NCBI GenBank assembly: GCA_964234715.1
Contig: OZ174279.1
DNA: 64,000 bases
Direction: 5' to 3' (one strand)
From: Podarcis melisellensis
Lineage: Eukaryota
Within the stretch, counting starts at the first letter, position 1. Each line of letters opens with the position of its first letter. The position numbers and the translations under genes are program-made. The notes beneath the pieces are model-generated. The model was not told the DNA's origin. It did not search any database and saw nothing but the letters and a program-made list of their open reading frames with translations. Positions 5,561 through 42,700 of the stretch are shown here, piece after piece.

Positions 5561-5625
<65 letters not shown>

Positions 5626-6105
5626 TCCATCCATTCTCTATATTTGCTTCTCTTTGCAGAGGCCGAGCGTGCTGAAGTTGGGCGTTTTGCAAAGAACTTC
5701 CTGCCCATTCTATTCAATGCCTATAGCCAGGAGGGTGGTGTCAGCGAAAGCCCCGTACAGCGGCGTTCTGTGTTGGACACTATAAGGGCCTACTTGACTG
5801 TGACGGAGCCAGGGGTGAGCAAAGCTCTGTGAACAAGACCAGACTTCTGAGATCATCACCACTTGCTTTGTCATTCCACCTTTCCTCTAGAAAGTGGGAA
5901 GCCAGCAGGGTTACTAGTTTCCAAATTCTCAAGACTTGGTTTTCAGGGCTTATTTTAAACTTTTTAAAATATTGTGTTTTAATTGTTGTAACCTGCCCTG
6001 GGACCTTGGAATGAAGGGTGAGTAATAGATTGTAATAGCAATATCATTCACCTCATGTGGGCCAGCTCTATAAGTGAACAACGTTGCTAGGAATAATACT
6101 ACTAC

Positions 6106-6141
<36 letters not shown>

Positions 6142-12100: not shown

Positions 12101-15100
12101 CAAGAGTTCATGGGTATATATTGGAATTAATGATCCACTCTTTCCCCAGCTTTGGTGAGGTGTTGTCCCACTTATTGTGCTGTTGGGAAGCAGTAGAAGC
12201 CCAGGGAGGGGGGCAGGTTTGCACACATGGATGAGAGAGAGAACCAAGGGAATTTATTTCATGAAAGGTGTGGTTGGGGGGGGGGCATCAAAATTCTAAA
12301 GCTTATGCTCTGCTTACAGTTAGAAGCCATAGGAGGATTGACAGACGACATGAGACGCCATTTCCGCATGAAGCTACGAAACCTCCTCTCTAAAATGATC
12401 CGCAAATTTGGGTAAGTTCTGGGGTTAGAGGGAGGACCGGGGAGATCCTGTGGCGTGATGCTCAGGAAGGAAAAGTTCTAAGATCTATATCACATTGCTC
12501 ATACACTGCTCACTCCAAAGCACTTGCTTCCTAGATGTGCTTGTCTTGAACTGTGCCATCCTGGATACAGCTTCATGCACACAAAACCTTGAGAGTGATG
12601 ACCAAGCACTTGAGAGTAGTCCAGATGTTGCTGGACTCCAACTGACATTAGCTCTAACCAATATGGCCAAGGGTCTGGGATTAACTGGAATTTTAGTTCC
12701 AACAGTTGGAAGGCCACAGGTTAAGCTCTGGTCTAATGCCTGTCTGACTTCTATGACTGGTAGTGGGGGATACGCGAGAGACTGGTTTCTGTGACACTGG
12801 TCTTCCGTCTTTACTTCCCAGGTTTGAGCCATTGCAGGCTTTGCTTCCTGAGTCGTATCGCAAGGTGCTGTTGAATATCCGCAAGGCTGAGGCAAGGAAC
12901 CGCAAGCGGCAAGCTGTGAAACGGGCAGCAGCCACTTCTGTAGAAGAAGGAGGACCATCGCAAAGACTCGTGGGGGAGAGGTATTGATGTAGTGCTGGTC
13001 TTGTCTTCATGTCATGCCATTGTTGAACCTAAAAGCTACAGTGTTTTAAGGCTAGAGCAGGAGGGGTGTCTGCCATGGCAAGTGCGTTAGAAGGTGAAGT
13101 GCTCTTTATGTTCCTCTGCACCCTCAGTAAGTACTACTTGCATTGCCTCTTGCCTTCTTGTTTACAGTATGGAGGAGGTCCTGGCAGACTCGGACTCTGA
13201 TCTTGAAGATGACATCAAGCAGCACAAAGGAAAAGAAACCAGGAAAGTGCTACGGCAACAAAGCCAGGCTTGGCTTAAGGAGGGAGAAGGCGATGAGCCC
13301 CTCAACTTCTTGGACCCTAATGTGGCCCAAAGGGTTCTGGGTAAGGAGCAGTTTGACAGTGGCACAATCTGCCTTTTCAGTTTGGGGAAAGTGGGAGATC
13401 ATTTATGCTGAGATAAAGGGGCTGTCCTATCTCCTTGTAAGTCTTTTGTGATCTTCTTTTATGCAGCTACCAAACCAGGCACGGGCCAGGCTGCTAAAAT
13501 CAGCCATGACTTCAAGGTATCAGCTGATGGCCGTCTCATTATATGTGAAGAGGAGGAGGAGGAAGAAGAAGGGGCTAAAGGTACTGGTGGATGGTCTAAT
13601 GTATTCAGCTGAAAACTGGCCATCAGTGGTCTACAAACTATGACTGGGCTTGGTATCCAAGCAATAGTTTATGTTAACCAGCTGTGAAGTCCAGTTCCAC
13701 TATGATAGTATCAATATTGTATACGTTTTTTGATCCCGATACTGTTTGATGGAATTGTTTGAAGTTAGATAACTTGGGCTTCATGTAGGCTGGTGAACAT
13801 GTGATTTATTTGTTTTACTTTCAACATGTGATTCACTCCAGGGCTTTTGACACTTTTAGCCCTTTCAAATTAAGACCGTTCACTGTCTTCACATAAAATT
13901 ATAATGTGCTTAAACATGTATTTACTTCAAACTATTTTTATACTGCCCTTCCATTAAAATAATTAAATAATTATGATGTAATAATATAATAATTTACTGG
14001 AAACATAAAGCAGTCCAGTAAAACATACAATACAATGTAGGTGCCACCACAGAGAAAGCACTCTTCCATGTAATGGAAGTTAGTGCCGTAGGATGGAGTT
14101 AGTGCCAAATGGAGTTGGTGCCTTAGGATGCAACACAAATCAGCAGCACCTCCTCCAAATATCTTAGGGAACATCTAAAATATGTTGCTCAGGGCTTACC
14201 AGCTGTTAAATGTTAACATAACTTACATTGTTTCCTGGTAATAAAAAACAGCAACCAAAATGTGTGTGGATTATTACAAAAATGAAGCACAAAGAGTGTT
14301 CTGGTGTGCTTGTGGCATGATTGCAGTCCTGTCCATACCCTTCTGGGAGTAAGCTCCTTTGAACACTTTGGTGTTTGCTTCTGATTAAAGTTTTATCAGT
14401 TCAATGTGTAAAAACATATTGAACAGCTGAAATGCATACTTTTAACTATAAATGCAAAAGATTTTACAAAGATGTTTTATGTATTGTTCTCGCGCTGATT
14501 TTTGTTCTCTGTTACAGGAGTGGATGAAGAGATGGCAGATCTTATGCAGGAAGTCGGGATCCGAAGTGTAAGTACTGAGAGACGGGCAGGAGGGGGGGGG
14601 GAATAGGAATTTCAAGCATTTTCTTTAAAGGCCCACACAGTTGCCAAGGTGACTTGCTTGCTGAAATCAAAGGGGAACTGAGCTTGACTGTCAAATACAG
14701 TTCTTGTTACCAAGCAGATAATGCAGGAAAGGGAGACGGCCTTGGAAACCCTAGTGAGAAGCCTAATTCATGTAGCAAGTGCTGATGCTTGGAAATTCTG
14801 TTGCAGAAAAAGGCTCAGAAGCGCAGATTCCGGGAAGAAGCAGATGATGAGGAGCTGGGCACTGATGCAAAACCACAGTATAAGGGTAAGTGCTTTTTTT
14901 CTGGGCTGGTGGTGTGGACTTAGCTGCCTTATCACATTGGATACATATCCCTGTAATAGGGAAGGGAAAGAGAATGAGATGCTGCTGCTTAAGGTTATTT
15001 ATATACCACCATCTCAGAAAATTTTAGGATGGTATACAATGAAATGTTTACATAAGACACCATTAAAAAGAGTACAAAATAATCATTTCAAGCAGCTGTA

Positions 15101-16614
15101 TAGGCCTGCTGGCATATGAGAGATGCCTGAAAGTCAAAAGCTAGGATACCTGCCAAATCTCTGCTGGAAGAGTGTTCCACACCATGGCCAACTTCTACTC
15201 AAGTCCAGTTGGACCTCTGAATCAGGGGATAATGTTTTGTGCTTATCCTACAAAACCACTCAGTGCTGTGTCTTGCTCCCAGTTAAACCTTAACACAGAT
15301 ACCCATCCACAGTATGCTTTCTCGTGCTGCTGAAGCACAATAATGTGGTGGGGGAAGTGTTTCAAACAGGCTCGCTGCACTTCAAGCGTTGTTGACTACA
15401 AGAAGCTTACAATCCAGTGGCGGACTGGGCAGAAACCTTTTTGTACAGCTGAGAGAAGCCTAGAAACTATTCCATTATTGTTTGTTCTTCACAGCTGGAG
15501 GTGTTGGAATCCATCGGCCTATTGGCAAGAATGCAGCACCTAGGCAAGCATACAAGGCAAAGGTAAGATTATGATGTGAATAATAGTTAGGACCTGGCAT
15601 TGTCATAACTCCCAGAAGTTGATTATTTGTATAGAGCCACTTTCCCCACATCATAGGAAGCCTTGTTTATTGGACTTACCAAGCAACTCAAGTACAGATT
15701 CATAGTCTCAAAGTATGTTAAAAGATGTCTTGGTACAGACAATGCAGATTTCTTGTCTCCTACCAGGAAATTTCCTTGGCTTACTTATGGCAGTCTTCTA
15801 CATAGTACTGCATTCTATTAACTCTCACCCTAAATACAGGGCTGCAGGCTGGCTCCCTTTTAAAGACGAATCTCTGTATCTCTAAGCTAGATCCGGTTTT
15901 GAATAATTGATCTGAATGTGAGGCATTGATAGATGTTGTGAAAGCTGATGTGAATGCCCATTTTGGTGGAAGTCTACCTTTTTCCATGTCTTGCTTCCAG
16001 TCACTAAGCATTGATTCCCTTCTGTTTCTACAGAAAGGCAAAGGTGATATCAAGAAGGGCCGCCTGGATCCTTATGCCTACATCCCACTGAACAGAGCCA
16101 AACTTAACAGAAGGTATGATATGGGGATGCTGTGGGGAGAGCATAGGAGAGCATTGTTAGTTCTGCTTGGACACATTGAAATTAATGGCCTTGACTAACT
16201 TAGGCCCTTAATTTCAATAGGTCTACTAAGAGTAGAACTTAACTCGATGCAACTCAGTGTCACTGTTCAGGATTTCTCTCTATCTGTAAAATGCTGCCAT
16301 GGAGTTGTGTGTGCTTGAAACCAGCTATGTTCTCTTATCTCAAGCACTCTGCTGGATATTCTTGAGATTTGAAGCTTCCTTTTTCACTGGTATCCCAGAC
16401 CTGCTTTTGCTGCAGAAGCAGGGCACCTAAAGCCTCCATGGGAGAACTACACATGTACTTGCTGTGCTTGTGGCAGTACTCATTCTAATCTCTTCTCTCT
16501 CTTTCTGGCAGGAAAAACGCAAAACTTCAGGGACAGTATAAGGGCCTGATGAAGGGGGCCCAACGTGGTGCCCAGGCAGGCAAGAGGCATCGTAAGAAGC
16601 AGCCCCATGTCTGA
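256..16614 (+). CDS. RRP12: RRP12-like protein (HEAT/ARM-repeat ribosome biogenesis factor), 3' 30 coding exons; 5' exons lie upstream of the window
   Basis: GT-AG exons with consistent phases: 256-361, 816-932, 1201-1339, 1487-1614, 1930-2028, 2240-2331, 2421-2532, 3049-3149, 3242-3356, 3642-3784, 4314-4435, 5029-5093, 5216-5378, 5660-5814, 7313-7380, 8114-8207, 8985-9143, 9285-9365, 10241-10346, 11303-11410, 11791-11948, 12320-12411, 12822-12980, 13168-13340, 13467-13580, 14518-14567, 14807-14885, 15495-15562, 16034-16113, 16512-16614 (TGA). Peptides [70 protein letters not shown] and [16 protein letters not shown] match vertebrate RRP12 as I recall it. Confidence 0.96.
5563..5626 (+). repeat. 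(CTTT)16 microsatellite in an RRP12 intron
   Basis: Read directly from the sequence. Confidence 0.95.
6092..6440 (-). mobile_element. L2-type LINE 3' fragment with (AAT)n tail
   Basis: (TAC/AAT)n tail, then ggcaccactaccaagaaggccctctg (reverse of the RAFLVVVP motif); same architecture as the 17951 copy. Confidence 0.65.
7468..7799 (-). mobile_element. Sauria SINE
   Basis: Reversed (ACCTTT) tail, ggtcatgtggccagcatgact, ggtacctatttatctact and a reversed B-box. It is the reverse complement of the copy at 52028. Confidence 0.9.
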
Positions 16615-20639: not shown

Positions 20640-21450
20640 GTTAAGGGCGCAGGAAATATACGAGGGACGGGGGGAGAGAGCTGTTGCTTGTAAGGGCTGA
20701 AAGCGCCTCCTTTCGCCTACTAGGTCACAGCATAACACCGTAGCTGTCAAGAAGGCGTTGGAAATGTCGCCGAGAAGACTACAAGCCCCAGAAAGCTTAA
20801 AGCCCCATTCTGGGTTTGCTCTCCCCGCCCTCTTGTCTTTGTGGGGTATTTCTCCTCCCCTCTCCTCGGTTTTCAACGGCGCTTCCAGGCCTGACGGTCG
20901 TTAGGCGTTTGCCGTGTTCGAACAGGCCAATGGCTGCGCGGCCACGAGGCGGCGGCGGGTGGGACTATTTTGCAAACAGCCAATAGGCTTTTGCAGTTGA
21001 AGCGACCAATCGGAAGGCAAGGCGGCAGATATGAGATGGCGGCGGAGTCGGCTCTGAGGGGGAGAGGAGGAGAGAAACGAGTGGGCAGGTAGGTCGGTTG
21101 CTGTGTCCGCCGGGCGGGCCGAGGTTGCGTGGCCAGAAGACTTTGAGAAGCTGAAGTGGGTCAGGTGAGGGCGGGGTTGAGACAGAAACAAGGCATAGGG
21201 TATACGAGCCTTTCGCTGTGGTGCCTCAATCATTTGTGTGGCCTTGGGACGTGAGGCCTGTGGTCCTGCCTCTAGGGCAAGCTGTTTCATAGAGCGGAGG
21301 TGCGATGCTCTGAAGCCTATCCCGTCTGCTCTTGCTCTTTGCCCAGGGGCTGAGGAGAGCGAAGGAGGCGGATCTCCCTTCTCCCTCTAGACGCGCCTGG
21401 GCGAGGAGCAGAGACGGGAGTGAGTAAGGGGCGACATGACAGAAGAATCT
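20640..21450 (+). promoter_or_regulatory. ARHGAP19 CpG-island promoter
   Basis: CpG-rich. CCAAT boxes at 20927, 20980 and 21006; TTCGAA at 20917-20922; GC boxes; YY1-like AGATGGCGGC over the ATG. Confidence 0.8.
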
Positions 21451-24400
21451 GATAACATTACGCGTGGCATAACAGATAGAGGAAGGTTTTCTCCCTCTCT
21501 CAACACTAGGACGAGTGGCATCCAATGCAGCTGAATGCTGGAAGACATAGGACAGATGAAAGACGAGGTCATAATTGGTCAAATTATGGAACTCGCCCTG
21601 CCAGGAGGCAGTGATTGACACTAACCAGTATGGCTCGAAAAGAGGATTAGACAAATTCATGGAGGAGAGAGCTGTCAATGACTGCCAGCCATGATGTGGC
21701 TGTGCAATGCCTCCACAGTTGGAGGCAGCAGTGGTTCCAAATAGCAGTTGCTGGAAACTTCAGGAGGGAAGAGTAGGCTCACAGTGGTTTCCCACTGTGA
21801 GAACAGGTTGCTGGACTAGATCCAGCGGGCTTGTCTTATGTTCTTATGAAGGGAAATCCTAGTGATTTGGGACTGGGAAAGGTTTTGGGGTGGTTGTTGG
21901 GTGGGATGAAGGAGAGATACAGAGGATGTCAATGTTCCAATCTAGTTGACATGTGGTTCTTCTAGATATTTATTTTATTTATTGCATTTATATACAGTAC
22001 CAGTTTTTTCTCCAAGGAGCTCCGGGTGATGTCCATGGTTCTTCCCCTTCCTCATTTTATCCTCAAAAGAAGCCCATAAGTAGGTTAGTGCTGAGAGACA
22101 GTGACTGGACAGTGTCACCCAGAGAGCTTAATGGCTGAGTGAGGAATTGAACCCTTAGTTTCCTAGGTTCTAGTCTGGCACTAGCCACTAGGCCACACTG
22201 TCTTTCCATGTGCCAGTGTGCACACCTAAAGTACAAAGTGTGGTTTTTCTGCCCTAATATCAAAGGAATAGTGTTCATACAGAGCTAATGTGGTGTATTG
22301 GTTAGTGTAGGACTAGAATCTGGGAGACCAGGCTTCATATCTCTGCTTGACTCACTGGGTGACTGTGGGCCAGTCAACCTCTCTCAGCACTAATCTCAGG
22401 CTTGTTGTGAGGCTAAAATGGGGAGAGGAAGAAGTATGTATGCCATCTTTAGCTCCTTGCAGAAAATGTGGGATGTAAATATATCAAGAAATAAATGCAA
22501 TGTGTTAACAGGTTAATAATACAACCATTGCTACTTCAACCATTATTGGAACGATACATTTCAATACTATGCAAGAAACAAGTCAGAATAAAATTTCTTT
22601 TTTAAAATACATTTTATTAATTTTCCAGAAGACATTTCCAAAACAATTGGTTCCCCACTCCCCCAGAATGTGTCAAATTTTCCCATAAATCTATATGCAT
22701 AATTGGTGGGTGTCACTCATCAGGGCATTTATTTGAATATTTTATAATGGGATGCCATATTGCAACAAAATATTGGTTGTATCATTCAGGTCGTGTATTC
22801 TCTTAGTTAGTTTCTCAGATAAAGCAAGTGTCCACATATTCTGTTTCCATTGTGTGGTGTGTAGATGATCAAGTCCTTTGCAGTCTTTTTTAATAGTTTC
22901 TTTTTGCTATGAGTAGTTGCGCCACTACTAAAAGAAAGGTGGTAAGTTCCATGTGTAATAAAATAAAAATTTCTATTCTATAAACATCCTCCTTGCTTTG
23001 TGAGCTTTTGATTTTTTTTTCAGGGCTTTAGCATGTTTATTCTTCGCATCCTGTAGGTTAAATGGCTTCTTTGCTCAAGCTTGCTGGAGTCTGCTGTAGA
23101 GTTAATAGTTTATTTTCTACTGTATTTTTCAGGGAGCACCAGTTCTTTTTTTTAGGAACTGCAGTTGGAGCAATTCTGTTTGATCTTACAGTGTAATCTT
23201 CAAAGTCATCCATTAGCTTAGGCCTTTGATACAGACAGCATGACTACGGCTCTGTTTGTAAGAAATGCCAAAATGAATGCTTAGTATTCATTTCTCCACA
23301 ACAGGCATGTTTTATTAAGCAGTTGGTTCTTCCATAGTTTATTTTCTGACCACCTTTCACTGTTAAAAGGCCTTTCTTCGCAATCACTTTTAATCCCTTT
23401 ATTCCTTGAAATATGGTCCTGCAACGCTCTAATATTGATCCTCTGGAAGTTGGAGATTACAGGAGGAAAGTTTTCTTAACACTTATTTTATGGCATGACC
23501 TTAAAGGGCTGCAATCCTTCAGATGCATGAAGTGTTATCCTGAGTTGCAGGTATATGTACACATAGTTGGTGAGGATTAAAATCAGAGGAAAATGAAATG
23601 CAAAAAGTATGAACAATAATAATTATTAGCTTCTCATTCTTCAAACAGTAGTTGATGATAGCACAAGCATCCTAGCACTGATACAAATATACCATGGTTC
23701 AAACCACAGATTACAATTTGTCAATATTTTATATGTTAAGCAGACACTGTTCTGTGCTTAATCAATTCTTATCAATATTTCCCCCCTGGGCCAATTGCTC
23801 CTTGCAATATCTTTTATTGTTAAATTAACTGTTCTACTTATTAATATCCCTCTGTACCTGCCGTGACTGAACAATCATCTTCTACTGTGGCCTTACCTCA
23901 AATGCTTGTGGGTGTTCTTCACCTTATTTATATTTATATGTATTTTATAGCCTACTCCACCCTGTAATCCCATGTTGAATTACATACAAGTAACATGCCT
24001 TGCCATATATTGAAGCATATCAAAGCAAGCAGCATCAGTAACAACACTGCAGTGGAATGCATATTCTTAATTAATCCTGTACCCCCAAAGACCTATGCAA
24101 AGAAGTGTGTCTTGACCCACTGACAATGTAGTTACAATAATACGGCCAGATGCATCTTAGAGGAAAAGCATGGCACAAGTTGGGGGCCACATCAAAGAAG
24201 GCCCTCCCACACTCTGTCATGGCCCAAACCACCTGTAGGATCTACACTGCAGACCTTAACACCCAGGCGAATCAGTACGTATTAGAGCTGCTCTTCAGAT
24301 ATTTCAGCTCCAAGTATTAGGTACTTAAGCACAGGGTCCTAAGCACCAAGTTAAAAGTTCTGGAAGCTGTCAGAGGCTCAGCCTTGTGCATGACTGAAAA

Positions 24401-27400: not shown

Positions 27401-30400
27401 CCTCAAATCTGTTCTAGATTATTTTCATACATGCTTAGTAATTTGGAATGTAAGTTAAATTGTTGGTCTTTTTGTTAAATATTTTGATTAGGATCTCAAT
27501 ACCAAACTTTGGCCAGTTATAAGGTCTTGCCCTCTGTAGGGTCTGATGTGTAATATGACAGGTGAGTGCATCCCTCAAACAGAGACCATGCTGAAGGACT
27601 ATCTCCAGGTTGTACTTGATTGATTGCTAAATGATGTGCTATCTGGTCATCCCCACCTGACTTGATTTATACATGTTGTGCTGGTATCTACAGCAAGGAT
27701 AAGAAGCCTCAGGCCCCGGGGACCAAATGTGGCCCTCCAAGCCTCTCTATTCAGCTCTCAGGATGGCCAAAGCCCATCACCAGCCCTGCATCCTCAAGTG
27801 CTTTTATCTGGGTTGAATCTATTCTTAATTATTGTAACATCACTTTATTGCCTTGCTGCAGAGCTGTGTGTGTGTGTGTGTGTGTTTTAGAAACTTTTAC
27901 GTGGTGGATGTACCTTATTGTATAAAAAGTCACATACCTGCCTCTGGCTCTACCCTCCACTGGTATGTGACTCCCAGGAAGACTGTCCATGAGGGAATGC
28001 TGTCCTTGGGCTGAAATAGGTTCCCTACCCCAGATCTGCAGGTGGCTACTGCGTAGCTGAGTATTTTAGTTTGTGTTCAGGTATGTCTCCCAAAGTAATG
28101 TATCTTTGTTTCTCTCCCTAGTGATGCCATTTGCAGTTTAGTTATCTGCAATGACTCCTCCCTTCAACGGCATCAGATCATCTTCAATCCAGACTTCTTT
28201 GTGGAAAAGCTGCGACATGAGAAACCTGAGGCATTCACAGAGCTTGTGGTCAGTAACATCACCCGGCTGATTGACCTGCCTGGAGCAGAGCTAGCCCAGC
28301 TGATGGGACAGGAGGACCCTCAGTTGCCTGGCACATCCTCAGGGTTTTTCCGTTCCCTGATGTCTCTGAAACGCAAAGGTGAGCCTGATGTGTTGGCTAA
28401 GATTTTCCCCTTAATTTTTTGATGTTAAGCCTTGGTATCCTGGGTACAGCCTCTGCTAAGTGTCCCACATATGTGGCAACAACTCCAAGGAAGTATGTGA
28501 AAACCTTTCTGGTCCAAGTACAGTGCTGACCAGTCCCTTATCAAAAGAAAATAAGGGCAGTACAGGCAATTCTCATTTTACATGGGGGTTCAGTTCTGGA
28601 CCCCTGCGTGTGTTGGCGTAGCGTGCATAAGCCCATTCTACTCCCACTCTGTTCCACCCCTGTTCTTCCCCTTTTCAGGAAATCTTTATGATGCTTCAGG
28701 GCTACTTCTGGGTTTGGCACTGTGTGCGTGATCATGCGTCATTCGGACAGAGCCAGTGTGGTATAATGGTTAAGAGCGGTAGTCTCGTAATCTGGGGAAC
28801 TGGGTTCACGTCTCCGCTCCTCCACATGCAGCTGCTGGGTGACCTTGGGCCAGTCACACTTCTTTGAAGTCTCTCAGCCCCACTCACCTCACAGAGCGTT
28901 TGTTGTGGGGGAGGAAGGGAAAGGAGAATGTTAGCCGCTTTGAGACTCCTTAAAGGGAGTGAAAGGCAGGATATCAAATCCAAACTCTTCTTCTTCTGCT
29001 AAATCGGTCATTGCCTGTAAGACAATGACAATGTTTATTTAAATACTTGATTTACACAAGGGGTGGGAAACCTGTGGCCCTAAGATGCTGCTGGACTCAA
29101 AGTCGCATCAGTCCCAGGCAGCATGGCCAGTGATGATCAGGGATGATGGGAATTGTAGTCATCAATATTTGGAAGGCCACAGGTTCTCCACTCATAGTTT
29201 TCTTTATCATCCCTTTCAATTCCATTCTTATGGAGGACAAAGCTCTTGTTTTGGCAGCCATAATGGTGCCACCCATGCTAGAAGGTAGTATATGCATCTT
29301 TATTTTTTTTAAAGCAGGTTAAAAAAAAAAGTCCCGAAACAGAAAGGGGAAAACTGCATAGGTGTGTGCTTCTATGGAGGGTGGGAAGAGGAGGTGGAAA
29401 GCAGCAGAGAGTGAGGAGGGTGTGGTGTGCAAAGATGCCTGCCCACATGAGATCCACTTTTGGGGGTAGTTTACTACATACAGCTGCAATAGTAACGGAC
29501 TGTGCCTCTTGTTTCATCTGGAATAGGAGAGCTGGGGAGAGACCTTAGCTTGGTGACAGAGCATGCACTTTGCATTTGGAAGGTTCCACATATAATCCCT
29601 GGCTTCTACAGTTAAAACTAATGTGCAAAATGTTTGCCTGAAATCCTAGACATCTGCTGCCAGCCAGACAAATAGTCTACTCTGATCTAGATGAGCAAAT
29701 AGTCTGAACAGTGTAGTCTATGCCTTATATCTTACCTAGAAAAGCAATCACTAGTTCAGCTGTCAACTGGTGTACCTTCTTCCTCCCATTGTGCTGCCTA
29801 CACTTTTGGGTGTGCCAGGTTTGGATGAATGTTGTGCTCCCACCCATACTTGTAAAACATTTATGTTTAATTCTTTGGTCAGCTGGTCATTCTGTGCTAC
29901 TAGCAGGCAAGAGGATTCCTATAGCTATACTCTCCTGCTTCAGCTGGCTCTCAGTCTCGGTTCCCTTTGAAGATACCCTTATTTGTATCTCCTCTTCAAA
30001 GTCTTAACTGGACCTATGTACAGTAGCTGCTAAGAGCAATGTTCCTATGGTGTTGCTTAGAGATGCTGAACAAGGAAACAGTCACTTAAGTTGGGAGAAA
30101 AATCTGGTAGACAACCAGCCTTGGACTCTCAACCTGCATTTCTACTTGTTTCTTTTCTGGCAAATTTATTTTGCTGGAAGACGATCAGAGTGGCTGGGGC
30201 AACCCAATCAGATGGGTGGCATATTATTATTATTACTAATTACTATTCATCTTCATCATCATCTAGGGATATATTCCTTCCAAACTGAATTAAAATATAC
30301 AGCCCTTATTTCCCACTGCAATATAACTTACAAAGGTTTCCATCTTGCCCTGGCAACAAAATAATTAACGTCACATTTAAAGGATGAAATGTGAGATTGC

Positions 30401-33400
30401 TTGAACAATCCTTTACCTGCCTAAATATGACTACAAATATCAGCCCAAATATCTAAGATGTAGTTTTTATACAGATGTTCTATGCCCTAGGAATATTGGG
30501 GTGGGAGGGAGTAGGCTTAATGAATGAATGAAAGAATGAAGAACCTTTGGGTTGGGGGGATGAAAACATGCAGGGTGATGTATAACGCTGGAGAGAAGAG
30601 GGATTAATTACTGGAAGGTGAATGATAAAGTTTTGGGTGGAAGAAGGATTTTAGATATGAGCAATAATTTTGCATGGTGTGTAACTGGACGTGCGCACAT
30701 GTCATGTGGCCCTTGAAGAGGTGTCCAGCCCTCAATGCCAAATAAAGTTAGCCACCCTGTTCTGGGGTATTTCCCTGTAGTGGGGAGGGGATCCTTGGAT
30801 AGCTTGTCCCTCCCCACTTGCTCCACTGGGCAGAATTATTCAAATGAGATAGCTCGTACCTTCCAGTGGGATGGTGACCCCTCCAGTTCCTTCCTGTCTA
30901 GCTCCTTGTGCAGGAAGAATGTCATGGGACTGGCAAATTGATTCCCTTTGTGGCCATGTATCAAAATTCATTTTTACTTTAATGCCAATCACATATTGGA
31001 AGTTACCATGTTTTTCTATTCCCCTTTAAAGCTGCTAAATGTATATGGCAGTGTTCTGCTAATGCTTCCTCCCACCCCTCCTCCGCCATGTGCTCCCCAC
31101 ACTCTCCCCAGAACTGCTCCAGAGAATTGAGGGAACACAGTGAACAGAATTTGGGGCATGTGAGGAGAGAAGAGAAACATCAGCCTACTGGTATCTAAAT
31201 GGAGTTCCATGTGCTGAGGCTGTGTCCCTATGAATTCCAGATGATGGAGACAAATAGGGAAGATTATCATTGCTATGAAATGTTCAATTAGGCCTGCTGG
31301 AAACAGAATGCTTGTCAAGATGGACTTCGGGTTTGCTCCAGGAAGTTAGTTTTTATATATTGCCTATCCTTCTGTGGAATATGTTCCTTTGGGTCATTTT
31401 GAAACAGATCCAAGTTTAGAAAACCTGTATCTGTTTTACAGCATACTTTCCTTCCCAGATCACAGTAAGCGTTTTTTTGTTTGCTTTTTTTAAAACCTGA
31501 GGAGTTGCATTTGCAAGAGAAAGGGTCGAAGTGAACACACAGTGAACTGGGGCTTTTTAATTCTGCCTTTTCAGTATAGTATGGAAATGCTTGCACATTT
31601 CTGGGTCTCACAACAGTTGATGATGTTGGCTACTCATTATCTCCTCCTTTTCATCTCTAGAGAAAGGGGTGGTTTTTGGAGCTCCACTGACTGAAGAAGG
31701 TATTGCTCAAATATCTCAACTGATAGAATATCTGCATAAGAGTAAGTGGCTTGTGGTTTCCTTTCAGTCGTTGTTTAGTCAAGGATAGTGGACTGGCCTG
31801 GGGACACATATTTAACTCATTTCTGAGCTGAGGAAGTCCTAGGAGCTATGTGATTCTAGACACTAACCTTTTCCTCCACCCCCCCATATCAAATGTTTAG
31901 TGATTCTTTTTGCACTAGACCTCTGTAGGATGTTCAGATAATGTGGCAGGAAGAAAAGGAAGGTATAAAAGGTTAAGAAGCTTTGTCAATATACTAGAAG
32001 AGGACAACATTTTATCTAACATATTCTTGATACCCCTCTTGTCTTTCTTCTCATGGTGCAGATCTGCGGGTGGAAGGCTTGTTCCGAGTGCCAGGAAACA
32101 GTACCAGGCAGCAGAACCTGAAAGAAGCCTTGAACAGTGGGACAGAAATTGACTTGGATTCAGGAGAGTTTCACTCCAATGATGTAGCCACTCTGCTGAA
32201 GATGTTCTTGGGAGAATTACCAGAGCCTTTGTTGACCCATAAACATTTCCATGCACACCTCAAAATTTCAGGTGAGTCAGCCTTGGAGGGAAGTGGGAAC
32301 CAGCCCACAGGATGTTAGCATCAATAATTTGGCGTTTGCCTTGTTCAGTGATAAAGCTGTTGGGTTAGGATCAGAGAAAGGCCTACTTTCTCTGCCCATG
32401 TCATAATAGAAATATATAAGCATGAAATCTTTGGGATTTCTGATTTATGCTGAGGAAAAAAAGAGTGCAAAGGAGTGTGATGGCAAGTTGGGAATGGGCA
32501 GTTGATAAAATAGTGTATAGTTTCCTGAAATGTGTGTGCAGATGAAGTTTCTTGAGATGTTTTCCTGTTACTAGATCTGATGCTGTTGGATGACAAGGGC
32601 AACAAGACCAACATACCCGATAAGCAGCGTCAGATTGAAGCACTGCAGCTCCTCTTCTTGATCCTGCCAGCCCCCAATCGCAGCCTGCTCAAATTGCTGT
32701 TGGATCTGCTTTATCAGACAGCCAAAAAGCAGGACAGGAACAAGATGTCAGCTCATAACCTGGCTCTTATGTTTTCACCTCACATTTTGTGGCCTCGAAA
32801 TGTAAGTGATGTTACATTTTTAGGCAGCAGTACAAAAAACCAGGCTGGGAAGGAGTTCGTCTGTCCTATCCCAGCTTGGCTGCTGTGTCCTAACTCCTGA
32901 AAATAACTCCCTACCTCTACCAGGGATCTTGCATCTTACCTACACTCTCCTAACAATTCTGCTTTGGTGTTTTCCACTATTGCCAGGTGACTGCCAGTGA
33001 CCTACAGGAAAACATTCCCAAGCTAAATAACGGGATGGCTTTTATGATCAAGCACTCGCAGAAGCTCTTCAAGGTAGGTGCTTCAAAAGGAAGGGACAAT
33101 CTCTATCTCTCTTTCAGTATCTGCTTAGCAAATGTGTCAGGCTGTCCCCTCCTGGGGGAAAATATGTTCTGTGCACAGTCCTGACACTGTCAAGCCTGAC
33201 ATCTTTTTATCTATTACTTCCTTGGAGGTGCTGTGTACTGTGCCTGCTCCCTTTGCTGGGTAGATCACAAGTGGCACTGATATGTGAAAACAAGGCCTCC
33301 TATTAAATTGGCAGGATATCCTGCACATGTGAGTGTCCTTGTAGTTACCGTGCCAAACTCTGCCTTAACCAGACAGTGCCCCTTTCCTGATCAGTTACTA

Positions 33401-36400
33401 TCATGGTCTCTGAGGCTGCTCTTTGGGTCCTCATCTGTCCCTCTTTGCCATTTAGCTTAATAAATACCCCTATTAATGGCTAAAATCTCTAGAAAACTAG
33501 GCAGGTTCACATTTAATTGTCAAAAAGTGAGACTCCTAAAGCATCTGGTAGCATACAACATATCTGAGATGATAAAGGACTGAATGTTTGCCCTGGGTGA
33601 CCCTCCTACCTATAAAGGAAGCACGCTTCAGAAGATTTTGCATGGATTACATTCAAAGATGAAGTTGCTGGTCTGGCGGGGTGAGTGCCTGGAGCAACTG
33701 CTATAGGATGGAACCTCAAAGTTGGGGAGACTTTGGCTTAATTGTGTCTGACTCCTTCTGTTTCACTCTCAAGGCTCCCTCATATATCCGGGAATGTGCA
33801 AGGCTGCATTACTTGGACTCCAGAACACATGCCTCAAAGGTAAGAGCAGTCCATGACATTGGTCATGAAAGGGAGCACCCAACATGGGCACCAGCAGGTC
33901 AGCAAACTGATAACTAAAACAGTCTTGTCATGAGAATTTCCAATAAGGGATTCTTTGGGGGAAATCTATTCCTTAGGAAGGCAGAAAAGACGTAATTCGA
34001 CCCCAATTTTGTCACTTGGACTGCTACATATCCCCTCTATTAAAATGTGTTCTAGTTAGGCTAAAATTCTAGAGAATGGAACAAATTCTCATTTAACTGT
34101 CAAAAATAGAACAACATTATTATAGCACATGCATATTTTGGGGGGAGAGGAAAAGATCGAGCCCTCAGCTGTTCACCCAGGTCTGACTTTGCTACTGGAT
34201 ATGAAGCTCAGACTGCCTTTATTAGTGTGATGAAAGGCAAGATAGCTTTCATTGGGAGTGGGGTGCTAATGGTCTTTATAGGACAAAACAGCCCGAAGTG
34301 CAGAGGGTTCTTTTGAATTTTTGCAGGATGACTTGGACTTGCCTGTGCCCCGGAATTTCAAGGACTTCCAGCTTCTGAAATTCAAGAAGCGAGGACTGGT
34401 GGATCCCTCTGCCCACCAAGAAGACACACAGCAACATACAGAAGAAGCACTGAAAGAGCTATTCCACCATGTTCATAATATGCCAGACTCTGCCAAGAAA
34501 AAGAAGCTCATTCAACAGGTAGAAGGGAGACTTGGGTAACTGACTGGAGCAAAGAGGCATGAATGGGGCTTTGTGCTTGGAATGGAAACCAGGATCAATC
34601 TTTGGGATAGATGGGCAATGCTGCAGAGTTAATTATGCTATAAAGTGTGTGTTCTAGTTTCAGAAGCACCCTGAAGCTCTCACTCCTCAGGCAGGTGTAC
34701 CCACACCCCGGACCCAGAAGCGGGCTCGCACTCGTTCCTTCAGTGGCTTAATCAAGGTATGGCTCTTTCTACCATTAACAATAACTTCAGCTGCAGTGGT
34801 GCTGCTCAAGTTACTTCTCGCTGGTGTATGTATTGGGCATATTGTCTGCTGTCCAAATGCATAAGCTTTCTGATGGTATGGGGTGTACATATTCAGGCTT
34901 CCATAAATAAACCCTATTCTGTTCTGTTGCCTTTTTCTTTCCGTTCCCCAGTCACAATCCCAGTGTTTTCCTTTTCTTCATACAGCGTAAGGTGCTGGGG
35001 AGTCAAGGGTCTTTGGATAAAAAAGGGAAGGATGCAGTTTTGGAATCAGCGGGCATGAAAGAGCAGAAGCACGGCAGCAAGGAAAATGTTAGCATGGTAA
35101 GGCCAGCTGGAAGAACAATCACTGTGCACTCATAATGGGGTTGGTTCATGAAGGGGGTTGGTGCTAGCTATTGCCTGCAGTTTATATCTGTCTGCACTGA
35201 TGTGGCGCCCTAAATTATCCTGAGCACAACAGGAAGTCTGGGAATAAGCCTAAAGCTCTAGATGCATCATTCACATGACTAACGGAGCAGCCCTAAGCTG
35301 TGTTGGTGCTGGGCCTGGAATATGCCACTGCTATGCGAGTGGAATGGCTACTAAATGCAGTACCTGCTCAACCCTGGACATGAGTGGGGAATGGAGGGAA
35401 GACACACCAGCCATGACCCCAACTTCCTTGGAAACACTGCTATTGTCCACCAGTTTCAGAATGTGGTAGAAATGATACCTCCCACGCTGCCCAGAAACAA
35501 AGAGAGCCAAACCACACTGGCAGGCTTGTGAGTGGAGCCATGCTAGCTACGACCATGCTTCCTCAATACACAGCATCCCAACATGTGAGCCTCAGTAGCA
35601 GAGCTCCCAAGAGGCCCCAGGCAGCCTTGTAGGAAGGGATCCAGCACTTCAAATACCCCACCCCACATAGTTGCACACCAGCCTCAGATCCCTGGCAGCT
35701 CATAGAACCAACCCCCAACCACCCTGTGCCTGATGGCTCTGCCTTCTGGGTAGCATCCCATCCCTCACTGACTGCCTCATATCCCCTGGCAGCAACACTC
35801 ATCCCCTTGGTGCATTCTCAGTGACCCATCTGTGGAGCCAGAGGAAACAGGAAGTGAGGGAGCCCAAGTCACATCCAACCTCCCTACCCACCCTCCTTCC
35901 AAGAGTTGCATCCTAAAGCCACTTGAACCTGATTCAATACTTATGGAACATTGATTTTTTTTATTGAATGGCACCTGACAGAGTGGATCTGAAAAGATAA
36001 AGAGGCATGTACATGGTTACTGACCAATCATCCCAGCAGAGTTTTTGTGCTGAGTGGCCAACCCTACAAAGGAGCAACTGGAAGGGAATTTTTCTGTGCC
36101 ATGTTTGGTATAAAGTGTTGGTGTTGATGTTGACATGGATGTGTATTGAAGGGGTACGGGATCCAGCATAAGTGCTGCTTGTCTCTGTTGCCCATAGCTG
36201 TGACACTTTCCAGATACGTATGTCACTGGCTGAGCGTTCTGCCAGCATATCTGTTATGGCAGTGACACATGTGGCATTCTTCCAGTGCAGCAGGGTTTCC
36301 ACTGAATCCTGTAGCCCCTGACCCAGTGTAGGAGTGAGCCCTAAGCCCATCTGCCCTGCTGCTCTTAGGCAGTTGAACTCTTTCTTTCCCAGTGTAACAA

Positions 36401-37514
36401 AAGGCTGTTTCTTTCCTTTCCAAATCTGGGGAATTGAACTTGATGCCTCTGCTCCTATTGGCTGATGGCCATTTTTGCATTTGGATGCTCCTTCCTTCTG
36501 AATTAAGGCTTCATATTTTTTTCTGGAGCAGCTTAATTTCCAGAAGTTTGGCAGACAAGTGTGTGACACGGCAGGCTAGTAAATCTATGCAGCATGAGTA
36601 AGATCATGTTAGAAGTTGACTTGAATTTAGGCAGGCCAGTTGCTGGCAACTGAACCATCCTATCTTAGAGAGTGACAGCAAGGTTCAGAGGTTAGAGTTT
36701 TCTCATCTTCCCTAGTTACAGAAACCTGCTTCCTCTCCAGCCATCAATGTGATTTGAGCAAGTCTTAGGTCCCCTGAGGACAGGAAAGGGGAGTTCAATT
36801 CTGTATGTATACATTACTATGTATAAGCAGCAGCAGCAGCAGCAGCTTGCAATCTCATGTTCTCCTTTTTGGTATGAAGCCTGTGGACTTACCAAACTGC
36901 CTTTTGGAAGAATAGAATCATAGAATTGTAGAGGGGGAAGGAATCCCAAGGGTCATCTGGTCCAGCTCCATGCAATGCAGTTATCCTGCCCACAGCCACC
37001 CCTGGGTGGGCCTGAACCATCAACCTCTGGTTAACATCCAGACACATTGACCCATTGCATCACAGAGGCTGCAAAGATTCTTTTTAAGTGTGTGATGTGT
37101 GTCTATAGCTTGATGCCTAAACTCATTGACAAGAAGTGACCAAGAAGCTGCTGTCAGGATGGTTAACTTTTATCTGACAGATAAAACTAGTGAATAGATT
37201 TAAAGTGTTAATGTTAGTCCTCAAACTGCCTTGAGTAGGCTATTTCTGTTGGCAGCATCCGTGAATGAAAGGAAGATGTGCAGAGAAGCAATCAAGCTAG
37301 AAGAGTGGGTTAAAATGGTCCTTAGCCTTAAATCTGGTCTTCTCAACAGGAAGCAGAGGTGTAATGTGGCGAAATGTGTCGGTGGCTTCCTTTCCTTTCC
37401 TAATGCTTGCAAGCACAGCTCAGTACAAATGTACTAATTATTCTCCTTCTGGTACAGGACTCCCGTAAATATACTCGATTCCATGGTTCCTCGACAAAGG
37501 AGTCTTCCATTTGA
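21036..37514 (+). CDS. ARHGAP19: Rho GTPase-activating protein 19, 12 coding exons; the penultimate exon contains an in-frame TGA
   Basis: Exons 21036-21088 (MAAESALRGRGGEKRVG), 28122-28378 (DAICSLVICNDS...FNPDFFVEKLRHEKPEAFTELVVSNITRLIDLPG), 31661-31741, 32062-32271 (EGLFRVPGNS; arginine-finger codon 32085-32087), 32575-32801 (NKMSAHNLALMFSPHILWP), 32987-33073, 33774-33839, 34327-34518, 34658-34756, 34986-35096, 36716-36802 (TGA at 36755-36757) and 37458-37514. All introns are GT-AG and phases are consistent. The last two exons are less certain than the rest. Confidence 0.93.
21465..21848 (+). mobile_element. CR1 LINE 3' fragment in ARHGAP19 intron 1
   Basis: ttatggaactcg..., aaaagaggattagacaaattcatggagg and a terminal (TTCTTATG)2 repeat. 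Confidence 0.75.
21965..22500. mobile_element. Two oppositely oriented, degenerate tRNA-derived (MIR/L2-tailed) SINEs (about 21965-22200 minus, about 22285-22500 plus)
   Basis: gtgactggacagtgtcacccagagag versus ctcactgggtgactgtgggccagtca; A-box-like gtggtgtattggttag. Confidence 0.5.
25423..25468. repeat. Perfect 23-bp tandem duplication
   Basis: tgccccacgatcttatgcaatgt x2. Confidence 0.9.
28563..29017. mobile_element. Tc1/mariner-type MITE with a nested SINE
   Basis: TA|CAGGCAAT ... ATTGCCTG|TA inverted termini with TA target duplications. Confidence 0.55.
28750..28997 (+). mobile_element. tRNA-derived SINE with L2-like 3' end and (CTT)n tail
   Basis: A-box gtggtataatggtta, B-box-like gggttcacgtctcc, gggtgaccttgggccagtcac core, agccgctttgag...aaggcaggatat and a cttcttcttct tail. 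Confidence 0.8.
36912..37060 (-). mobile_element. CR1-tailed tRNA-derived SINE
   Basis: atagaatcatagaattgtagag (reversed CR1 tail) plus a reversed tRNA-like head (ctgaaccatcaacctctggttaaca). Confidence 0.55.
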
Positions 37515-38168
37515 AGATCCACTCAATGGTCGGTCTCTCTCTTTATATCAGTATCTATCTACACACAGCAAAGACTTGCAGCTCTGTGGATAATGCCTGC
37601 TACTCCCAAGCTGTGAGTCAGGACTCGCTTATCCCTCTAACCTCACTTATTGGAGCCTGGCCTACAACTGTGTGTCTGCCAGAATAACAGACTCTTCCAT
37701 TGAACATGAGGAAACCACTATTCAACCACTTGTCTAGCCTGAGAATGGACTGGACAGTATCTGCAGTATAGCCTCTCTTTGGAGAGGTTGCTTTGTATGC
37801 CTTGTTCTCTCAGCTGTCCATCTTTCTAACAGTTCTTTGGGACTTGGCTTACACTGTCCTGTTTTGTGGCTGGTGTTTGTTTGTTTGTTTTTTGATTTTG
37901 GCTTTTAGTGTGTACGCACACTGTTTCTTTTACCCCTGCAATTCCCATTAGCATCCACAGTAGAGTCAAGCTTTCAGATCCCCTTGGCAGCTAGGCTCAT
38001 CTCAGCCTCTCTTTGTATGGAAGTCTCTCTGTTGTGGTTACTGATGGGATTTGAGAAGTAGCTGTGCTCTTAGCTGCCTCTCCCAGATTGCAGGGATCTC
38101 CCTCAGGCCTGTGGCTCATCTGTCACAAATCCCAGCGTCGGACGTATCCGAACTTAGACATCTTAAAC

Positions 38169-39335
38169 CAGGGATGCAGGGAGCCTGTGGCACTCCAGAT
38201 GTTGTTGGATTCAGTCTCCAGTTAGCCCAGCCAGCATGTCCTATTCTTGGGGATGATTGGGAGTTGTAGTCCAGCAATATCCCTCATTTAAGAGCAGCGG
38301 TAGCAGGAAAGAATTTCTGCAAACTGCCCCTTTAAAAAAATAGAGCCCAAGGGCTCCTTGCCTGAATTCTAGCATGTCTGCTGAATCACCTGCAATGTGA
38401 TTACATCTTTCTCCCCTCAAAGGCCGCCAGTTCTGTTGCCACAGACACTTGCCTTCCGCCTGCTACAATTATTCTTCCATCAGCGCTGATTGCCAAGACA
38501 GCGTTTTGGCTGAGGCTCTGCCTGATGGAGTCTGTTTCACTGCCCCCTACCTGTCACATTCCCATTGTCTGTGGCCCAGGCTCTGACGTACGTTGCTTAG
38601 GCAGGACAGGGGGCTGACAGTTTAATGACTAACAATCTGCTGAAAATGCACTGGAAGAGACGAACTTGCAAATACAGAAGGCTAACTGACTTGCTCCTTG
38701 GAAAGGAGGAGAGGCTGTCAAGATGAATAAAAGAAATGTTCCTGTTTCCTTCCATCAACGAGAAGAGGGCAGGTGGGAGGGTAGTGCAATGCTATAGCAA
38801 TACTGCTATTTGCAGCTCTGTATTTGCTAAGCTTTCCCCTGCACCTAAAGGAACAAGTGTCTGTCTGGGTCAGGGGTGGTGAACCTGTGGCCCTCCAAGT
38901 TGTGTTGGACAAAACGCCTATTAAAACTCCCTATTACCAGTACACTGTCATCAGCCCCAGCTAATGTGGCTGAGTTGAACAACATCTGGAGGGCCACTTA
39001 CTATTCCTGATAACTGGCTTCTGCCTTAGTCTCAGATAGATTCGGCTCAAAGGCTTTTGCAAAGGCACTGTATATTTGAATTTCCTAAATATGTGAGGAT
39101 TGAGCTTCTTTTTATTATTCTAAAAAGACTGTCGTAAATCTGTGTCAGGGACCCTGTCAAATGGTCTTCTGATGTGTAGAGATGTATACACCCCTGTTAA
39201 AGCAGGTATGGGGAACCTGTGGCCTTGCAGGTGGTGTTCAACTCAACCTCTTGTCACCCACAACAAGTAGCCATATGGTCTGGAGCTGATAAAGAGTTTG
39301 GGGTCCGACCACATCTGGAGACTCACAGGTTAGCT
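38169..39335. mobile_element. Three short palindromic hAT MITEs in the ARHGAP19 3' region (about 38169-38280, 38871-39000, 39203-39335)
   Basis: Each starts CAGG..GAACCTGTGGCC-like with internal inverted arms (ccagatgttg / caacatctgg). Related copies lie at about 29057-29190, 40070-40175, 43115-43230 and 55840-55930. Confidence 0.6.
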
Positions 39336-39743
39336 GCTTCTATGTTCCTCATCTCCCCAACATTGAAGCTGGTATGTAGCTTCAACCAAAGAAGTAGAAA
39401 ACTGCTAACACTTGGGAGGTCATAGGCAAGACTGAAAAGTGCCAAAAAAAATGTCAGGGGAAGCAATCATAGTGGGCAAAACCAGTTTCGGTTACTCTAG
39501 ATCTTAAGCTTGGGTCATTCAAATCTTAGCGGTATTGTAAGTGAAAGCAGGACTGCCCCCATTGTTGTGTCAGCGTTGCTTGTGCAGGTTCTCTGACTGC
39601 CCCCAATGTTTTTCATGTTTTACTGTTCTCTTAACTTATCCTTATGTGGACAACCTTTACTTATTTATGCAATGTAGTGATGTAAGTAAAATAATATGTT
39701 GTTTCTTGTGGTGTATTGCCCTCTGTTAATGTGAAAATCCTAC

Positions 39744-39749
39744 ATTAAA
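39744..39749 (+). terminator. Candidate distal ARHGAP19 poly(A) signal ATTAAA (proximal AATAAA alternative at 38726-38731)
   Basis: ATTAAA after an AU/GU-rich 3'UTR-like stretch and followed by tggtggttattggtg. Which signal is used cannot be read from the sequence. Confidence 0.45.
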
Positions 39750-42700
39750 TACTGGTGGTTATTGGTGCCTTCTTAACAGACTCTTGGCTAATTTTATTTT
39801 TTATGCAGAATGGAGATCGGATTTAAGAGACGGAGAGTCTGTTACCATAAATATAATGACTTTAAAAGTGTGTGCTTCTGGAGCTGGGCTTGACCAGGGG
39901 ACTCCTGTGCCCGTTCCCTTCCAACTATCAACAACCCACTTCTTTTCCTCTTGCTCTTTCCCATGATTCTATATTCTTCCCATTACTGGCCCATCATTCC
40001 ACAATGGAATAGAAAGTGGGCATCACACTAGTCCTCATAGACATTGTAAAATGGAAGGTCCTCCATTCTGTTATTGGAGGACAACTCTCATCTGCTGTAG
40101 CCAGCACAGCCGGTGGTCAGGGCTGATGGGCATGGTGGTCCACTAACAGCTAGAGGGTCACTGGTTCCCCATCCTCTGTAGAAGGGCTTCTGAAAAGACA
40201 TTTGAGAAAAGAGGGAGCCTGTATTAGATGATCACTATGGAAAGAAGGTTCTTCCCACGGACTGAGTTAATGGAGTAGAGAACCAAGACAACAATGCAGT
40301 CAGAATCCACCCCACTTCTCCACAAGGCTTAATTAGAGGGGAAGGCATAGTTAGGTTTCCTGCTGGCATTGACCCCTGTTGAAAACCCCTGGAGAGCCAC
40401 TGCCAGTCAGCCTAGACAATGCTGGACTAGCTGCACCATTTCTCTGGCTCAAGGCAGCTCTTCATCCAAGTTATTTCAGAACAAAGTGATGGGGAAAAGG
40501 TTATACCTTGCAATCATCCAGCGAGCTACCAATAACTACCTTCTGCCAACCCATGTAGGCAATGCTACTTCTGAAGCATTAACATTGTTAAAACCCAGAG
40601 AAGTTATTTGTTGTCATGTGCTGACAGTCAAAACTGAGGGAATCGGAGAGATCCTGAACTCAAACTACTTCCCTGGAGACTGACCTTAGGAAAGGTCCCA
40701 AAGCTATTTCTCCTGGAAAATGAAATTTCGTGACAGTTTGAAAAGTCACGGCAACAGTGATGATAGGATGTGAAACCTGGTTGCCTTCCCATGCATGCAA
40801 GTGTCTGTCTATAACTGGTGGAAGGACCTGATCCTTGTTTGCCAATTCCCTTTCTCCAATATTAAAATCTAAGCAAACAGTACTTTATTCTTGGTAAAGA
40901 GAGGAAAAAACTTCTGCTACAGAGCCACAAGAGGGAGCTATTTGCTCATCCATGCCTTGTGATTTCCTGTCCACACACCTTAGCATGATCAGCTGGTAGG
41001 TGAAAGGGATTGTGACATGAGAGGTGATGGAGCAAAGGATTGCTATTCTCATTCTTGGTTTGGCCAGTTTTCTCTGTTTTAGCAGATGGGGCCCTGTGAT
41101 TTATTTTCTCCATTGCCTTCACTTGATGCAAACTGCTCCAGATTCCTTAAGCCAAGCAAAATGGGGCCCACACACCAACCCGATGACATGCTGTAATGCA
41201 GTTCCTAATGCAGATGAAACGCAACAGCCCTGTAGCAGTTATTAATGACTCCCATCCCAAGACCACCTTCTAGCTAGCCATAAATACAGAGAAGACAACT
41301 CCTTGGCATCTCTATCAATAAAGCAGGACAAGACTATTATGCCTCCCTCTCTTGTCGGGCCAGGGAAAGGGTTTGGTGGGCTCCATGCAAAGGAAAATCC
41401 AACGGAGTTGAAGAGAAGCAATGCGATGCCCAGTGTACTTCCTTTTGAATCCTTCCTGCCCCCTTCCGGGAGCCAAGGCAATCAGGAAAAACCCTTGGGA
41501 ACCAAGTCCTCTCCAAAGAGGCATGAGTTTATTGCAGTAAAACTGCAGTGTTTGACACTATGGAGAAATATGCCAGACATACTTGGCAACAGCAAGTGGA
41601 AAGTTAGCCTAATAAGCAGTAAATTATCCTACTCTTTCCCTGAGGAGGGATAATGAATTTCTCCAAGTAAAGGAACAGAGAAGGAGAGAGAGGAAGAAAG
41701 TGTAACAGTGAGTACAAACAGGGTCTCTGGCTTAGAGATTCTACATGGAACAGTAACCAAATTCCCACAAATTTGTCACATGTGTGTGGAATTTGATCCA
41801 TTTTGTGTAAACGATGGCTAGAATGCGGTGGGGGAATAGCTGGCACATTCTGCAGCATCTGTTAGGAAAGCTATTGTAATAAGAGTCTCTGAGGGTTCCA
41901 GGACAATAACCATCTCAAGTCCACGTACCTGCAGTTGAAGCCAGTTTCCTGAGCCACCCAAGTGGTGGGATCTTTCCTTTTGCCCGTAGGAAATAAACTA
42001 AGAATCAAGATTACAAATAAATACTTTCTCTGGGCTGGGAGACTGCTACAGTCAATTACCCAAACAACCGTGAAGGCCCTTGGTAGGACCGAATAACAAA
42101 TCCCAGAAGCTACGACCAAAATAGGCTTCCGTTGTAACCAATAATGTGCTGCATTATGGAACTCTGGATGGCTTTAAAGGCTGGAATAAAGCCATATTGG
42201 AAGGGGGAGGTGTTGTGCGTCCTCTGACTTGAAAATATCAGAACTAAAGGTGGCGGAAATCCAAGTATTTAGCAGTTACTAGGAATGCTTTTAACCTACC
42301 TTTCGAGGGCATATGTAAATTCCACCTCCACACTTGCACATGTTGTTGGCCACCATGTCGAATCAACAACCAATGGCTGGAATTGAGACATATTTTGAAA
42401 AATGTACTCTCTTTCAGAACCCAGTAGGACACAAGCAAATCCCCTAGTGGTTAGAGGCCACTGAAAGGAGGCAAGATGGGTCTCACTTGGAAGGGAGTTC
42501 CAAATTCTAGGGCCGCCCAGAGCCTTTCTGCTATTTATTACCTACTTTTCTTCCTCTACATTTCTCATGGGTACGCAATATGCCGCACCTTATAGCTATA
42601 AAGCAAAGTGGTTCATGCGGTAGCTAAAACATGTTTGTTAGTGTGAACAAGAGCTGTGGAAGCTGCACATTCTGAGCTAGAAGTCTTGTTTATATCTGAG

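Follow-up and report, generated by a model that had tools for sequence, protein, structure and literature searches.

Probable remnant of a lost penultimate exon of ARHGAP19 in Podarcis melisellensis, with an in-frame stop codon and a deleted splice donor common to three lacertid assemblies

In this study, the organization of ARHGAP19, and of an exon-like segment near its 3' end, was investigated in a stretch of 64,000 nucleotides from Podarcis melisellensis, which is referred to here as the window and is free of N runs. The exon coordinates were obtained by tblastn with orthologues together with inspection of the AG/GT borders, and the annotated P. muralis protein was used as the reference for the exon comparison, with the exons handled singly. 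The coding exons are laid out as follows.

21036-21088 (+): exon 1 of ARHGAP19, coding part, with the ATG at 21036; in agreement with exon 1 at both the P. muralis and the P. raffonei locus
28122-28378 (+): exon 2, from tblastn and AG/GT borders
31661-31741 (+): exon 3, from tblastn and AG/GT borders
32062-32271 (+): exon 4, from tblastn and AG/GT borders
32575-32801 (+): exon 5, from tblastn and AG/GT borders
32987-33073 (+): exon 6, from tblastn and AG/GT borders
33774-33839 (+): exon 7, from tblastn and AG/GT borders
34327-34518 (+): exon 8, from tblastn and AG/GT borders
34658-34756 (+): exon 9, from tblastn and AG/GT borders
34986-35096 (+): exon 10, 37 codons with the end ...KENVSM, AG/GTAAGG borders, 100% identity to the P. 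muralis protein
37458-37514 (+): last exon, coding part, 18 codons ending in ESSI, with the stop TGA at 37512-37514

The original prediction had taken this gene to be ARHGAP19, and the identification is borne out by the orthologue matches, as the window exons display 89-100% identity to P. muralis ARHGAP19 per tblastn segment, most of them 95-100%, the lowest-scoring segment being one that extends past the exon 4 donor into the intron. The RhoGAP domain lies within exons 2-9, PF00620 is precomputed for the P. muralis ARHGAP19 cluster, and every exon from exon 5 on is of phase 0-0. Exon 2, used as a query to test the ARHGAP19-specific N-terminal region, retrieved ARHGAP19-type proteins only. 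The neighbourhood of the gene also supports this identity, given that the RRP12 HEAT gene is found immediately upstream of ARHGAP19 at the P. muralis locus. We observed in the window, upstream of ARHGAP19 at about 3000-16500 (+), open reading frames that resemble RRP12 exons, which fits the P. muralis neighbourhood. Over 5 kb, the window shares 97% identity with both the P. muralis and the P. raffonei locus and is identical to neither. Between exons 2 and 3, a stretch of 54 open codons (31028-31189, +) shows 96% identity to the extra exon that sets Podarcis isoform X1 (532 aa) apart; no counterpart was noticed among the other squamate proteins, and the stretch is possibly a lacertid-specific alternative exon of ARHGAP19.

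Between exon 10 and the last exon, the original prediction had described a segment at 36716-36802 (+) that reads as 13 codons, a TGA at 36755-36757 and 15 further open codons in translation, preceded by a polypyrimidine tract with AG and followed by GTATGT, and the sequence agrees with this description. The distance of 45 nt from the TGA to 36802 is likewise as it had been given, and translation confirms that the frame stays open past the TGA and runs on into 37458-37514, with its ESSI end. The proposed exon boundary was only partly right: the segment does correspond to a phase 0-0 penultimate exon, but the ancestral exon measures 75 nt (36716-36790) and not 87 nt. The features of the segment are listed below.

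36697-36715 (+): polypyrimidine tract and AG acceptor (AG at 36714-36715) of the presumed dead exon, intact and conserved with Rhineura
36716-36790 (+): remnant of the ancestral penultimate coding exon, 75 nt, 25 codons, phase 0-0, in gap-free alignment to Rhineura, Eublepharis and Tiliqua
36755-36757 (+): in-frame TGA from an ancestral CGA (Arg), C to T at a CpG, with TGA in three lacertids against CGA in the outgroups
36791-36792 (+): site of a 2-nt deletion removing the GT of the ancestral 5' splice site, from the DNA alignment
36803-36808 (+): GTATGT, a conserved part of the intron lying 12 nt beyond the ancestral donor, also present in the Rhineura and Tiliqua introns

A (CAG)7 microsatellite was also noticed at 36829-36849 (+), just downstream of the remnant, and contig breaks seem to fall there.

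For the comparison at DNA level, the loci of the window, P. muralis and P. raffonei, representing the lacertids, were aligned with those of Rhineura, Tiliqua and Eublepharis as outgroups; the lacertid sample consists of Podarcis-like genomes, with no Lacerta or Zootoca protein among the matches listed. The remnant aligns base for base to the annotated penultimate ARHGAP19 exon of all three outgroups, so that the orthologous exon whose existence the original prediction had proposed to check is indeed there. At the position of the stop, the window, P. muralis and P. raffonei carry TGA whereas Rhineura, Eublepharis and Tiliqua retain CGA (Arg), which confirms the earlier suggestion of a CGA to TGA change and, by parsimony, places this arginine-to-stop change on the lacertid branch. 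The second lesion is found at the exon end, where the exon and donor read GAG/GTGAGC in Rhineura, GAG/GTATGT in Tiliqua and GAG/GCAAGT in Eublepharis, while all three lacertids display GGG/G--AGTTC, the last codon being changed from GAG to GGG and the GT deleted. As the outgroup exon ends in ...AAAGAG immediately before the donor, the true ancestral exon is 36716-36790. In Rhineura and Tiliqua, the GTATGT at 36803 recurs inside the intron, 12 nt beyond the donor that is really used, and since species splicing at the upstream donor already have it, it represents old intron sequence and no new splice site. As an observation in its own right, the penultimate exon of Eublepharis appears to use a GC donor (locus about 24090-24100) where other squamates have GT.

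Both disabling lesions, namely the deleted donor GT and the CGA to TGA change, were tested and found in the three lacertid assemblies, and because they are common to P. muralis and P. raffonei, they represent neither an allele nor an assembly slip. A check for a C or an error at 36755 had been proposed; a Logan contig from a DNA run of the organism that the window comes from showed 0 differences over 34800-38208, so the TGA is not an assembly slip. Along the lacertid branch, 9 substitutions were counted by parsimony in the 75-nt remnant, 7 of them non-synonymous including the stop, against 2 on the Rhineura branch, the numbers being small; exons 8, 9, 10 and the last exon together recorded 22 lacertid and 16 Rhineura changes, which are again small numbers. 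The ratio of 9:2 against 22:16 (lacertid to Rhineura), that is, faster change in the remnant than in its neighbouring exons, is only suggestive of relaxed constraint on the remnant.

For the protein comparison, an exhaustive search with exon 2 led to a sturgeon isoform and a pipefish protein. A word search with the full-length pipefish protein retrieved teleosts only, while the sturgeon isoform, and then Tiliqua, reached the squamates, and together these searches yielded the ARHGAP19 of about 300 vertebrates. The C-terminal layout consists of the end of exon 10, of the type ...KEN-x-x-[LM], a squamate penultimate exon of 25 residues, of the type LQ-x-P-x-SSP-x-INVIRARLKS-x-EHRKE, and a last exon of the type DS-x-K...ESSI. 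An end of the type E-S-S-[IV] was noticed in coelacanth, sturgeon and chimaera and in most of the sauropsid proteins; judged from these alignments, the C-terminal exon layout of ARHGAP19 is old. The remnant matches the penultimate exon residue for residue in about 20 sauropsid proteins. This exon is found in most of the non-lacertid squamate models (Rhineura, skinks, Hemicordylus, Elgaria, iguanians, most snakes and geckos), as well as in the turtles, crocodilians and birds sampled; the non-lacertid squamate models lacking it are those of Naja and Varanus, which are aberrant or partial.

For Podarcis, five distinct RefSeq isoform models were retrieved (three of P. muralis and two of P. raffonei; XP_028586369-71 and XP_053245449-50), and in every one of them exon 10 is followed directly by the last exon. 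These five models correspond to seven database entries and the cluster representative, all reading ...KENVSM/DSRKY...ESSI, and the 18-residue tail of the window is identical to that of the Podarcis proteins. Among fishes, the annotation of sturgeon, bowfin, bichir, arapaima, whitefish and a shark likewise includes models that lack the penultimate exon, and these indicate that in-frame skipping is viable. In mammalian ARHGAP19, the sequence of the penultimate exon is kept and the protein ends soon afterwards (...KGFL and similar), with no ...ESSI; the same region seems to have been remodelled independently in mammals.

With regard to what the 25 lost residues carry in other vertebrates, we observed a conserved S-P motif followed by a basic R-x-[RK]-L-K patch, and this S-P site with its basic patch is the sole tail motif conserved from sharks to mammals. 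The CDK1 site Thr476, which times cortical recruitment, belongs to human ARHGAP19. It falls in the homologous segment (PMC12646654, citing Marceaux et al. 2018); biallelic loss of the human gene leads to a motor neuropathy (PMC12646654). The human Thr476-Pro477 align to the Ile-stop of the window, and since other sauropsids have I/T-R at this position, the CDK1 site is mammalian. By alignment, the loss in the lacertids affects the S-P motif and the basic patch, which are widely conserved, and not the Thr-Pro CDK1 site.

The RNA evidence comes from the assembled contigs of two runs, of two species related to the window's own organism, generated in two separate studies. Both runs, which bear no RNA label on record, were taken as RNA from their behaviour as cDNA, the exons having a depth of 25-184 and the introns of 0-6. 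Among the joints listed, a single GT..AG joint is present in both runs, from 35095/6 to 37457/8, skipping 2361 nt, at a depth of 35.8 in one species (run X1) and 110.2 in the other (run X4). In these contigs of related species, the segment is absent from the mature mRNA, and the flanking phase-0 exons are joined in frame. The expectation that skipping would yield the ...ESSI end is confirmed by this joint. Of the three junctions that the original prediction had proposed to count, 35096-37458 was seen, whereas no joint into 36716 or out of 36802 was found among those listed in the contigs of the two runs. The remnant itself is covered only at a depth of 3-6, by unspliced contigs continuous with the intron on both sides (36078-36804 at 5.8x in X1 and 36689-36931 at 3.2x in X4), and the X4 contig crosses the proposed GTATGT donor unspliced. 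Single contigs also span 37457-39000 at depths of 52 and 184, and as one contig thus runs from 37457 past 39000, the 3'UTR of ARHGAP19 is longer than 1.5 kb. Within this 3'UTR, two high-copy repeat pieces were noticed at 38180-38260 and 38870-39000 (+), with DNA-run depths of hundreds to thousands and many chimeric joints in the DNA contigs.

One further feature lies in the intron close to the remnant.

36906-37081 (-): tRNA-derived SINE, about 115 nt downstream of the remnant, with an Rfam tRNA match at 36997-37069 (-)

In the DNA runs, the depth over this SINE reaches about 60,000 at 36912-37055. The element is present in P. muralis and P. raffonei and absent from the same spot in Rhineura, the Rhineura alignment jumping from window position 36905 to 37082 with no gap in the Rhineura locus. 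The SINE may have contributed to the exon loss or may have arrived afterwards.

Taken together, these observations indicate that the segment is very probably a dead exon, left over from the ancestral penultimate exon of ARHGAP19 (75 nt) and no longer spliced into the message. It would be an ordinary case of lineage-specific exon loss and not of a truncating mutation. In the sequence of events that we propose, a C to T transition at a CpG turned CGA into the in-frame TGA, and a 2-nt deletion erased the GT of the 5' splice site; either lesion may have come first. The donor deletion would enforce skipping, and the TGA would be a consequence or a companion of relaxed constraint. The spliceosome would then pass straight from the end of exon 10 (35096) to the start of the last exon (37458). 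As the lost exon is symmetric (phase 0-0), the reading frame and the ...ESSI end are kept, and the resulting protein would run in frame from ...KENVSM to DSRKY...ESSI with 25 internal residues fewer. Such a loss was probably tolerated because exon-skipped forms occur elsewhere, being annotated in several fishes, and skipping may itself have been the route to the loss.

Several other explanations of the segment were weighed against this exon loss. The 87-nt segment might still be spliced in through the GTATGT at 36803, in at least some tissues, so that the TGA would give an NMD-escaping message, a C-terminal switch or a poison exon, and the protein would end in ...SSPAINVI and lack ...ESSI. The intact acceptor and polypyrimidine tract speak for this, as does the usable-looking GTATGT lying in frame 12 nt past the old donor; eight weaker joints exist besides those listed, and assembled contigs drop rare isoforms. 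Nevertheless, the skipping joint reaches a depth of 36-110 with no inclusion joint among those listed, the coverage of the segment stays at intron level and runs on into the intron at either end, the segment is missing from each of the five distinct RefSeq isoform models of the two Podarcis species, and the GTATGT occurs equally in the introns of species whose upstream donor is in use. We consider such inclusion quite improbable, and the protein lacking its last 34 or so residues, which had been expected from the stop, falls with it, since that product needs inclusion of the exon whereas the only GT..AG joint listed for the RNA contigs is 35096 to 37458 and the Podarcis models skip the segment. 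The earlier alternative of a nonsense allele or a fixed truncation holds in so far as the TGA is fixed, being common to the three lacertid assemblies, but not as regards a truncated protein, because the exon is skipped in the RNA contigs.

An error of assembly or sequencing at the TGA, or a nonsense allele segregating in an otherwise functional exon, would accord with the single-base CpG transition, since errors and polymorphisms are both most commonly of this kind. Against this stand the identical DNA contig of the same organism over 34800-38208, the same TGA and the same donor deletion in the P. muralis and P. raffonei assemblies, and the absence of the exon from the mRNA anyway, which together make this account very improbable. 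If the exon were included, decoding of the TGA through readthrough or as a selenocysteine codon might draw on the 15 open codons after the TGA and on the frame that continues into the last exon. However, a run of 15 open codons is about what chance would give, the ancestral codon was CGA for arginine and not one for selenocysteine or cysteine, the exon is not in the mRNA contigs, and a search of 34000-41000 for SECIS elements or other Rfam families at gathering score returned only the tRNA-like match of the SINE; such recoding is extremely improbable. With the donor GT deleted and the only GT..AG joint listed running from 35096 to 37458, neither the C-terminal switch nor the readthrough that the original prediction had raised is supported, for the ancestral donor is gone and the GTATGT bears no sign of use in the one case, and the segment is absent from the mRNA contigs with no SECIS or other RNA element found in the other.

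This study acknowledges that the mRNA structure of Podarcis ARHGAP19 is already in RefSeq, and that the new part is the recognition of the intronic fossil and of its two lesions. Exon loss accounts for what looked like a premature stop in a cell-division gene of relevance to disease, leaving a protein that is predicted to be intact save for a clean internal deletion of 25 residues, and the locus offers a clear example of exon death in which the splice donor lesion and the nonsense lesion are both visible and common to several species. It also calls for caution, as intronic exon-like open frames with good acceptors can be fossils. Again, the tail of ARHGAP19 is seen to be evolutionarily plastic, the lacertids having lost the penultimate exon and kept ...ESSI, and the mammals having kept the exon sequence and ending in ...KGFL. 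Two more far-reaching readings, namely that the exon loss rewired the mitotic control of lacertid ARHGAP19, and that the remnant serves as a tissue-restricted stop exon through the cryptic donor, removing ...ESSI, are unlikely when taken jointly. Should the rewiring be true, lacertid ARHGAP19 would be a natural deletion mutant that could reveal the role of the 25-residue segment.

We know of no description of exon loss in lacertid ARHGAP19. The Podarcis RefSeq models have the same junction between exon 10 and the last exon and the same 18-residue tail as the window, so the correct mRNA structure is already in public annotation; unlike the present study, that annotation marks neither the intronic remnant nor the loss of the ancestral exon. 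Like a poison or cassette exon with a premature stop, the remnant resembles an exon, lies between two coding exons and carries a stop in frame. Nevertheless, both splice sites of a poison exon work and its inclusion can be measured, whereas here the ancestral donor is deleted, leaving only the cryptic GTATGT, no inclusion junction was found among the joints listed, and no annotated isoform includes the segment. Lineage-specific exon loss by splice-site decay is an established category (review PMC12992808, citing Wang et al. 2015), and the present case agrees with that account in that an exon coding in relatives goes unrecognised after a change in its cis splice site, the intronic remnant gathers lesions and the symmetric phase keeps the frame. 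It differs from the cases as outlined there (PMC12992808) in that the lacertid ARHGAP19 donor GT is deleted outright and not merely weakened, with a shared nonsense codon besides. The closest analogue is exon 3 of TNNI3, which shrews and moles have lost or inactivated (Joyce et al. 2024, as given in PMC12992808) and which is likewise a short in-frame exon, known in mammals to carry regulatory phosphorylation sites. The present case differs in that the Thr-Pro CDK1 site of ARHGAP19 is mammalian and absent from other sauropsids, and what the lacertids gave up is the more widely conserved S-P motif with its basic patch.
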